This document shows, in pieces, positions 19,720 through 22,700 of a stretch of DNA of 64,000 nt. A model generated the notes under the pieces. That model was not told the origin of the DNA. It searched no databases and saw nothing but the letters and a program-made list of their open reading frames with translations. This DNA is from Salpingoeca rosetta. Lineage: Eukaryota > Protista > Choanoflagellata. The stretch spans positions 1,081,200-1,145,199 of the forward strand of contig JAWQFM010000006.1 of the NCBI GenBank assembly GCA_033442325.1, written 5' to 3'. The first letter of the stretch is position 1; the number at the start of each line of letters is the position of its first letter. Position numbers and translations under genes: made by a program.

Positions 19720-22700
19720 ATGGCTTCAAAACAGCAGTGGTGAGTCTTGTGTTGAACATGACACAGGTTGGCCTGAACGCTCTTGGGTGTCCTTCTGTCC
19801 TTCTGTCCTTCTGTCCCTTTCCCTTGTCTATTCTCCATGGCTACCGATGGTTGGTGTTTGTGGCCGTTGAGATTTTGGTTTGGTGGCTCTGTTCATCTGT
19901 TGTTGGGTGTCTTGTCCACTGCCGTGTTGGCTCCAGCATACCTCACCTCATGTGGCTCGTGGACTTGCAGTGACTATGTCTTCAAATTCGTCCTTGTTGG
20001 TAGAGATGCTGGCAAAACAAGTTTGATTAGTCAGCTGACAGAGAGTCAATTCGACGTAAGTTGTTTGCATATCCTTGATATGCGTGATCACGTCGTCATT
20101 GTTCATTCAGCATTGTCATGCGCTCCCTTATTCTGTGCGCATTGCATCTTCACACTGTTGCTCATACGTGATGCCGCCATATTTCAACCATTTCATTGCA
20201 GGCTCCCATTTCCAGCACCCTTGGCGTTAGCTTTGTATGTCTAATCCATGCTCATGCATTCGGTCTGATAGTGTTGAAGCGCACGAGGTGATGCGTGGAA
20301 TCAGCTTCTTCCGCTACATGCTCACACTGGAACATCCATCAATTCTTCAGAGAACCCATGAACTCGAACTTCACGGGAAGCGCACACAGCTACAAATTGT
20401 ACGTCCGTTGTGGTCATGTATTTCAATCCGCTCTGTCACGGCCTGTCCTCCGCTTCTTGACCAGAGCATGGGGTCATCAGGCAGCCACACGAACACTTTC
20501 ACGCACTCGCATTCAACGAAGCACCCCTCATAGCTTCACCCTTGCCTCTTGGGCCCTTGCATGACGCTTGACAGTGGGACACAAATGGGCAAGAACGCTT
20601 CCGTTCCCTTTCGCATGCATACTGTCGAGGAGCACATGGCATCCTCCTTGTATATGACGTCACTCGGCGGGTGAGACGGCCCGAGTCTTCACTCGCGGTT
20701 GCATGCGTCTGTTGTTGAAGGTGCTTGGGGTTTGATGGTCGACTGGGAGTTACCAAAGCTTAGTCTGCAGTTTGTGTGATTGAATGCTCCAACAGGACAC
20801 AGTCAACACCATTCTGGAGTGGATGAAGGACGTAAGGTCCTATTCGGATCCCAAGTGCTGCGTGGCCCTGATTGGAAACAAGTGCGATCTCGGAGACCAT
20901 CGACAAGTGTCGTTTGAAGACGGCCAGAGGTTCGCGATGGAGAAGGGCCTCGTGTTTTTCGAAACAAGCGCGAAGACAGGCGAAAATGTGGAAAAGGCAT
21001 TTCAGGAGCTCACAGCCCAGGTGGTGCATCGGCTCGAAACAGAAGATCCACCAGGTGGGGCGCTGCACGACGCTTGCCGCCAAGGAAAATTCGACATGGC
21101 ATCCTCATTGCTGAAGTGTGGCCAGGACGCCAACAAGCTTAACGACACAGTGGGTTGCACAACGCATGTCTCTGCCAGCTTAGGTGTGCTTTCCTCGAGC
21201 TTTGTGAAGCCACATATTACATTCTTGTGGACGCTAACCACCATCGACCTCATTCACTCATGACTCCCTGCAATCAATCATCCAGGGGAGTCTTCCTCTG
21301 CATATGGCGAGCGGAAGCGGCGCGTCTGATGTTGTGCAGCTGTTGCTCAAGCACAGCGCCGATATCAATGCAAAGGACAAGAAGGTATTGGCCACCCTGT
21401 TCTTCTTGGATGCGCGCGCGTGTGCGTCTGCGCAAGTTCAGGTCTTTGCACTCGGGCAAGTTGTAGAAGTTTCTCTGTGTCTGTGTTCCTCCATGTTGAC
21501 ACGCGTCTGATGATTATTTCATCTGCTTGGAACCCCATCACTCGCGTTGGATATAACCACCCCGTCACCTCTTCACGTGCCCCTACTCCCCCGCCACCAG
21601 GGATGGACGGCCCTCCACTACGCCGCGTCCAACAATCATGCGAACGCTGTGCGCGTGCTCCTGGAACATGGCGCTGACACCACCATCAAGCACCGCTTTG
21701 TGAGTGAAGCATACAGCTGGTCGTTGCGACCCCACGCGCTCTTGTTGTGTTAGTTGCTTGATGTGCGTGTTGAACTGGATCGCTGTCACCCAACCTCTTT
21801 TTTGTGTCAAATCTGCCTTCCTGTTCATGCCCCTCCCATCATCTGCTTTCGCCGCACACGCACACGCACACACACACACACACACACACACACACACACA
21901 CACACACACACATACACACATACACACACACACACACATTCCATGCGTGATTGACAACAACAGCTGTTCGGCAAGACGGCTCTTGACCTCGCTGTCAGCG
22001 GTGGGCACAGTGATGTCATTAAGCTGCTTCGCAACCCGCAGGTGTGTGTGTGCTATGCTTGTGATGTATTGTTGTGTTGCTGTGTCATAAGCTCTGCTTG
22101 TTCAAACTCCATCATTCCCTCCTCCTCCTCCTCCTCCTCCTCCTACCACGCACATTCATTCTGTTGCGGACTTGCCCTGTTCACGCATATTTCACCTCAC
22201 CTGCGCAGGCTGTGCAAGCACGACCACCATCTTCACCACAACCTGCATCCCTCCATGATGCCTGCAAGCACGGTGACACTGCGCGTGTGTCTGCACTCAT
22301 TGACAAAGGCAATGTGGACGTATCCGAACAGGATACGCAGGTACGTGTTTGAATACACGGGTGTGTGTGTGTGTGTTGTCTCCATTCCCTGGTGCAGATG
22401 AACGCAGCAGTGTATTCATCAGACTTGTTGCCTTTGCTCATGCTTGTGTGCTATCTTGTTCACGTTGATCATGGCTGCTTGCATGTGCAGGGCGATACAC
22501 CGCTGCATGTTGCCTGCAGGCACAATCATGCAGCTGTTGTGCGGCTGTTGCTGAAGAAAGGTGCCAACATCACCACAAAGAATAACAAGGTGTGGCATGT
22601 TGAACCGGACACTTTCACTGCACACCTCCGTGTATTCTTTACATCTGTTGTGCAGTTTTGTGCGCGCGCCGCTGTATCAGCATTCGCGGGTCGTGCAGTG

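Follow-up and report, generated by a model that had tools for sequence, protein, structure and literature searches.

PseudoGTPases, proteins in which a G-domain fold carries non-canonical G motifs, are a known class represented by the pG1 and pG2 domains of p190RhoGAP (PMC5593906), EhRabX10 (PMC8514894), and the microsporidian ArlEM (PMC13393502). Integrated domains have been described in the NLR immune receptors of plants (PMC5067614; PMC4759884). In brown algae, expansions of the ROCO family have been proposed to act as immune receptors, and architectures that join a Roco core to a TIR domain are known elsewhere (PMC11378527). This report deals with a gene of the choanoflagellate Salpingoeca rosetta located in a stretch of 64,000 nucleotides (assembly GCA_033442325.1, contig JAWQFM010000006.1, positions 1,081,200 to 1,145,199 of the forward strand), here called the window; coordinates are those of the window unless another contig is named. 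The gene is intron-rich, and its product is composed, in this order, of a Rab domain, ankyrin repeats (ANK), Roc, COR, and a probable TIR domain, so that the Rab domain forms an N-terminal head. The most important feature of this head is a P-loop of seven instead of eight residues which, judging from a comparison with paralogous genes, is ancient and maintained. The exon model was derived from the genomic sequence, and its exons were searched one by one, never as a joined model; the genome searched comprises 55.4 Mb in 68 contigs.

Where the canonical G1 motif is GxxxxGK[S/T], the head reads GRDAGKT. The Pfam Ras profile aligns 24 residues of exon 2 to 25 profile positions, the Rab structures matched by this exon in the PDB align 26-27 query residues to 27-28 chain residues with the gap inside the loop in the printed alignments, and the same single P-loop gap appears in MAFFT alignments with Rab14 and Rab2. 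Elsewhere in the G domain, the head and Rab14 align without indels. Since strand beta-1 is of normal length (FK and four hydrophobic residues, then Gly), the residue that is missing must be one of those between the two loop glycines. All 52 Rabs matched in the PDB, as well as the Pfam Ras profile, have one residue more in this loop. Among the 269 related proteins from the sequence searches on which the motifs were scored, 202 of 210 P-loops are canonical and only two are one residue short.

The read support for the loop and for the exon joints comes from Logan contigs. Two RNA contigs from separate studies (X17 and X18) match exon 2 with 0 differences, and a DNA contig of 1871 bases from a third independent study (X8) covers positions 19500-20874 collinearly, with 0 differences and 0 gaps. 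Because the independent DNA contig and both RNA contigs give an identical loop, an assembly error is excluded. All six predicted joints, each of the GT..AG type, are present in the two RNA contigs, in which the transcript is seen up to position 21350; the gene is thus transcribed, with the splicing predicted by the model. In 16 runs belonging to six studies, at least 96% of the words sampled from the stretch are present. One RNA run inspected as raw reads (X24) gave 11 reads only, none of them over the P-loop.

Judged by its database matches, the head is a genuine G domain of the Rab2/Rab14 type (Rab2/4/14 group), in which Rab2 and Rab14 are not separable. The Pfam family PF00071 lies above its cut-off of 21.6 bits on both exon 5 (41.8 bits) and exon 6 (71.1 bits). 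All of the best PDB matches are Rabs, namely Rab14, Rab2A, and Rab4, with E values of ~4e-18 for exon 6 against Rab14 and Rab2A, and the summed exon scores amount to ~119 bits for Rab14 and ~120 bits for Rab2A. The Rab14 of S. rosetta itself (P0024), whose exons match a gene on contig 35 at 90-94%, is 37-69% identical per exon, the highest value being that of exon 5. Five RabF motifs are recognisable in the exon translations and alignments (LGVSF, QLQIW, RFRSLS, YCRGA, and LVYDVT), and the hydrophobic triad Phe/Trp/Tyr used by Rab effectors is kept. The Lys and Thr of G1 are likewise present, together with the Thr of G2, the DxxGQ of G3, NKCD (G4), and ETSAK (G5). The domain lacks a C-terminal Cys prenylation tail: exon 6 runs straight into an ankyrin repeat, and this junction is crossed by an RNA contig. 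A word-index search with the Rab half returned ordinary Rabs only, at no more than 53% identity, the index being blind to long fusion proteins. An exhaustive search of representative sequences with exon 6 did not return the protein itself and gave no relative above 57% identity. Among the best matches of exon 6 are two long proteins, P0133 (assigned in its record to a gammaproteobacterial metagenome bin) and P0203, both of which have SidM/DrrA N-terminal-like regions and nucleotidyltransferase regions in addition to several Rab-like domains. A search of the genome for a parent Rab identified none: the introns of the Rab14 gene of contig 35 and of a Rab2-like gene of contig 11 (at 1.75 Mb) lie at other positions.

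Two additional residues of the pocket are unusual. The G3 position normally occupied by Ala (116 of 134 relatives) is Asn in the head and in only one of these relatives, and the switch I position that is Asp or Glu in 133 of 136 relatives is Ser here and in two of them. On these counts, the head combines three deviations of about 1% each, all lining the nucleotide pocket, and its short G1 and rare switch I and G3 residues, set in a G-domain fold, agree with the description of a pseudoGTPase. Seven-residue loops were also seen in the Rab-like domains of a protein from Trichomonas vaginalis (P0141, XP_001320899; GDPSGKT, with canonical switch I, DxxGQ, and NKxD) and of a multi-G-domain protein from Amblyomma americanum (P0140, XP_077521215; GEVAGKT). 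An earlier reading of the window made without any search (the sequence-only reading) had described the head as having a P-loop shortened by one residue, an altered switch I and G3, no prenylation tail, a Rab2-group likeness, and a preserved Rab surface, and all of these are borne out, as are the positions that it gave for G1, switch I, G3, NKCD, and ETSAK. The deletion that it proposed is found in the DNA contig and in both RNA contigs (the raw-read run is uninformative at the loop). Its start of the domain at 19971 is correct for exon 2 but not for the start codon, which lies at 19720.

The age of the short loop can be estimated from two further genes of the same genome in which a Rab head is fused to Roc-COR. 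The sister gene on contig 11 has exons of identical size (85, 33, 48, and 96 bases) and a loop of the same seven-residue length, GAVAGKT. Upstream of position 20845, the exons of the two genes are 41-60% identical and their introns are unalignable, with only 42-54% identity when an alignment is forced. Over 103 codons, the two heads share 39% of their amino acids, and the proportion of silent differences (pS) is 0.74, which is saturated, against a proportion of replacement differences (pN) of 0.42; the saturation of synonymous sites limits the claim on selection to pN being lower than pS, with no dN/dS figure for the head. Since the contig 11 head shares the deletion despite this saturated divergence, the deletion predates an old split. 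The reading frame, the exon lengths, and the splice sites are kept in both heads and replacement changes are fewer than silent ones, which argues for maintenance and not for decay. By this comparison, the deletion is ancient and maintained under purifying selection. The term "degenerate", applied to the head by the sequence-only reading, is therefore too strong for a domain with pN below a saturated pS, intact exon lengths and splice sites, and retained nucleotide-binding residues.

The contig 11 head is the more eroded of the two: its switch I reads MGADV and its G3 reads WDTGANAS, with loss of DxxGQ. The third fused head is found on contig 5 (802822-810821, minus strand; positions 5271-6540 in gene orientation), directly before Roc-COR and without ankyrin repeats. 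Four of its five intron positions are exactly those of the window gene, and the fifth, after the P-loop exon, is five codons away; the positions common to both are absent from the Rab14 and Rab2-like genes of the genome. The contig 5 head has a canonical loop (GDTQVGKS) and a G3 of the form WDSGGQE, but its G4 is MKSD instead of NKxD, and Met occurs at that position in only two of 299 related G4 motifs. From these structures, the three fused heads seem to descend from one fusion. Each of them carries a different lesion of the nucleotide pocket, a pattern suggesting that the constraint on nucleotide cycling has been relaxed or altered while the fold was kept. Both short-loop heads read AGKT before helix alpha-1, as does the Roc loop of the family (GQGRAGKT), where the usual Rab sequence is VGK followed by Ser or Thr. 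The DNA of the Rab loop (20008-20019) and that of the Roc loop (23290-23310) were compared and are unlike, with no evident conversion from Roc.

The rest of the gene has a different history. From 20845, a point inside the Rab domain, to ~24900 on the plus strand, its identity with the contig 11 gene is 84-99%, with the introns counted in, and the contig graphs of X8, X17, and X18 branch exactly at 20845 into the contig 11 sequence. From ~24600 on, up to 26820, the gene matches an LRR-type paralog (that is, one with leucine-rich repeats, LRRs) on contig 10 at 88-100% identity. To judge by these identities, the gene from 20845 onwards is a gene-conversion mosaic of paralogs, which leaves the portion from G1 to G3, the initial two thirds of the head, as its only private part.

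The paralogs form a large family. A query with the COR region gave 49 matches at no fewer than 39 separate loci; upstream of Roc-COR, a Ras-family match is found at only three of them, those of the window gene and of the genes on contigs 11 and 5. No G6PD-derived head was confirmed in the family, as none of the four PF00479 matches adjoins a Roc-COR locus obtained with this query. The Roc domain of the window protein is canonical (GQGRAGKT and DLGGQ) and is followed by COR-A (65.4 bits), the arrangement by which Roco proteins are recognised. N-terminal modules were read from the upstream 8 kb of 20 other paralogs, of which 13 have RI-type LRR units spaced ~270-290 bases apart; the motif pattern used to recognise them matched 35 times on the gene strand and 0 times on the opposite one. 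Searched singly against Pfam, the LRR exons had no match at E <= 0.01, and the repeats were recognised by the motif pattern instead. Other N-termini consist of ankyrin repeats only (L048) or of a TIR-like region after a hydrophobic stretch (L039), and at one further paralog locus (L046) a histone H2A gene lies just upstream. Since most of the paralogs checked begin with LRRs, the Rab head sits where the sensor repeats usually sit. An extra domain that only a minority of the members possess, in a receptor-like family that has expanded, is what would be expected of an integrated domain. The coordinates of the gene are collected in Table 1; the last ANK exon (22488-22592) is common to most paralogs. 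Dinucleotide repeats fill many of the introns of the region, and a run of N at 28600-28950, downstream of the gene, lies inside a stretch rich in (CA)n/(TG)n.

Table 1. Exons, motifs, and domains of the Rab-ANK-Roc-COR gene with its probable TIR end, in window positions.
Feature	Position	Strand	Description
Exon 1	19720..19739	+	Start codon and first 6 2/3 codons (MASKQQ + TG); joint 19739>19971 (GT..AG) in RNA contigs X17 and X18
Exon 2	19971..20055	+	beta-1, P-loop, and alpha-1 of the Rab head; weak Pfam Ras/Roc match; 0 differences in RNA and DNA contigs
G1/P-loop GRDAGKT	19999..20019	+	7 residues against the canonical 8
Exon 3	20202..20234	+	Switch I; joints 20055>20202 and 20234>20351 in RNA contigs
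Switch I STLGVSF	20214-20234	+	Thr retained; Ser instead of the usual Asp/Glu
Exon 4	20351..20398	+	beta-2/beta-3 interswitch; joints in RNA; 16 codons, as in the paralogs on contigs 11 and 5
Exon 5	20575..20670	+	G3/switch II to LVYDVTRR; Pfam Ras 41.8 bits, E 1.1e-10
G3 WDTNGQE	20575-20595	+	From the exon translation
Exon 6	20796..21149	+	C-terminal Rab half and first ankyrin repeat; domain ends ~21040; Pfam Ras 71.1 bits and weak Ank matches
G4 NKCD	20877-20888	+	From the exon 6 translation
G5 ETSAK	20961-20975	+	From the exon 6 translation
Exon 7	from 21286	+	An RNA contig spans 21025-21149>21286-21350
Ankyrin-repeat exons, Rab head to Roc linker	21286..22700	+	GxTPLHxA-type motifs in translations of open reading frames
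Roc and COR-A/COR-B	23202..26055	+	Pfam COR-A 65.4 bits (cut-off 35.3); Roc 17-19 bits on exon pieces, below cut-off
Probable TIR, poly-Glu, and C-terminal tail	26030..27412	+	Weak Pfam TIR_2 match, E 0.0036, below cut-off

Taken together, these data make it probable that the head is a maintained non-canonical Rab module which does not cycle like an ordinary Rab and through which a Roco-TIR protein binds other proteins, Roc being the working switch. Because the deletion is ancient and maintained, the module is a stable one, and neither a mistake of the assembly nor decay accounts for it. Altered nucleotide handling and a role as a binding head are the most likely interpretation of its sequence. 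Nucleotide binding by the head may be weakened, abolished, or locked in one state; the head would act in protein binding at the position of the LRR sensor, and the canonical Roc domain would remain a working GTP switch controlling the TIR end. Several observations weigh against this interpretation. All residues that contact the nucleotide and Mg are retained (Lys and Thr of GKT, the switch I Thr, DxxGQ, NKCD, and SAK). Nucleotide may still be bound, because GKT survives in both sister heads despite a saturating divergence, and the short loop may be compatible with function, because the Trichomonas protein P0141 combines GDPSGKT with otherwise canonical motifs.

A different role for the head, which is possible and can be held only tentatively, is that of a targeting or intramolecular module that binds endogenous Rab partners, placing the protein at an organelle, or that docks in cis on the ANK or Roc-COR parts. 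LRRK2 is recruited by Rabs, and Rabs bind the N-terminal repeats of LRRK2. The ANK part of the window protein matches the LRRK2 ANK model (PF23745), although weakly (E 0.006) and below the cut-off, and the kept hydrophobic triad and RabF motifs would suit the binding of Rab partners. Other proteins that join a Ras-like domain to Roc-COR exist, such as P0243 (Ras-Roc-COR-kinase). Nevertheless, a head without a prenyl tail cannot itself anchor to membranes, and in the contig 5 paralog the Rab head stands directly on Roc with no ANK between them.

The sequence-only reading had proposed an integrated decoy, in which the head is a Rab-mimicking bait: bacterial effectors, or guanine-nucleotide exchange factors and GTPase-activating proteins, would bind or modify the head, Roc-COR would be released, and TIR would become active. 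Rabs are frequent targets of bacterial effectors. Several observations favour this proposal: the head is rare (three of at least 39 paralogs), it replaces the LRR sensor in a large recombining receptor-like family, the window copy keeps the Rab surface motifs, and apart from the head nothing in the gene is private and anciently diverged, its body having been homogenised with paralogs. The role of bait itself is purely conjectural, with a targeting or cis-regulatory role at least as likely, and on balance it is rather doubtful. We know of no effector or pathogen of S. rosetta that targets Rabs. The contig 11 head, in addition, has lost most of its switch I and switch II surface (MGADV and WDTGANAS), unlike a faithful mimic. 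The ROCO expansions of brown algae have been put forward as immune receptors (PMC11378527), and plant NLRs provide established cases of integrated decoys (PMC5067614). Integrated domains in plants, however, usually are added to the LRR and do not replace it.

It is also unlikely that the head is a fully working GTPase, whose seven-residue loop would bind and hydrolyse GTP in a protein with two active G domains. Apart from the length of the loop, all catalytic and binding residues are present, GKT is conserved in both sister heads, and the Trichomonas protein has the same loop length with intact motifs. Set against this, the eight-residue Walker A is essentially invariant, not only in the 202 of 210 relatives but also in every PDB Rab match inspected, the G3 Asn and the switch I Ser are very rare, and nothing of DxxGQ is left in the sister head of contig 11.

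A bolder and quite improbable reading is that the head is a selected and permanently locked Rab mimic which acts as the ligand or bait controlling the ANK-Roc-COR-TIR switch, a natural Rosetta-stone fusion in a unicellular organism closely related to animals. If this were true, the Rab-Roco partnership known from LRRK2 would predate the kinase, and Roco-TIR receptors could monitor Rab-directed attack in the way that the integrated decoys of plant NLRs monitor effector targets. Finally, an error of the assembly as the source of the missing codon, or a pseudogene remnant in this region, can practically be dismissed, given the exact agreement of independent DNA and RNA contigs, the six spliced joints, the open frame through the ANK, Roc, and COR parts, and a sister gene with equal loop length.

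The gene, like its family, is public and annotated, and what is described here is one deviant domain within them. The new elements are the ancient, selected seven-residue P-loop in an otherwise intact Rab head, the three-way comparison of paralogs, and the location of a conversion breakpoint within the Rab domain. Few features of P-loop GTPases vary as little as the eight-residue Walker A loop. A seven-residue version that selection has long preserved in this head, with an independent counterpart in Trichomonas, offers a natural test of whether so short a loop can hold nucleotide. A covalent fusion of Rab and Roc-COR in a close relative of animals makes the relation between Rabs and Roco proteins, which is central to LRRK2 biology, accessible to testing, and integrated sensor domains outside plants can likewise be tested directly, since the organism is genetically tractable.

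Compared with canonical Rab14, Rab2A, and Rab4, which belong to the Rab2-4-11-14 supergroup, the head has the same Ras-family match, the five RabF motifs, and intact G2-G5, but it differs from them in its seven-residue P-loop, the Ser of switch I, the Asn of G3, and the lack of a hypervariable tail or Cys, as well as in its C-terminal fusion to ankyrin repeats and in introns that are not shared with the Rab14 and Rab2-like genes of the same genome. In the N-terminal Rab-like domain of the 1044-residue, multi-G-domain Trichomonas protein P0141, recorded as a 'Ras family protein', the loop also has seven residues; P0141 belongs to an unrelated lineage, is 35% identical over the P-loop exon, and has no detected Roc-COR or TIR. 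As in the known pseudoGTPases, a G-domain fold with a non-canonical pocket lies inside a larger protein or beside a working G domain. In p190RhoGAP pG1/pG2, EhRabX10, and ArlEM, however, several G motifs have been lost by substitution, whereas here only the loop length and two positions deviate.

At the level of the whole protein, the architecture resembles that of the Roco proteins, among them LRRK2, DAPK1, and MFHAS1, the LRR-ROCO proteins of brown algae, and the TPR-ROCO-TIR protein of Chondrus, which also have a central Roc-COR, N-terminal repeats (here ANK), and a C-terminal effector; as in brown algae, the family is large and recombining. Unlike in those proteins, a second G domain, of the Rab type, replaces the LRRs, there is no kinase, and the effector is a probable TIR. 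The similarity to the integrated domains of plant NLRs is that few members of an expanded receptor-like family possess the domain, which is derived from a host protein; the differences are that the switch is Roc-COR and not NB-ARC, and that the domain takes the place of the LRRs instead of being added to them.

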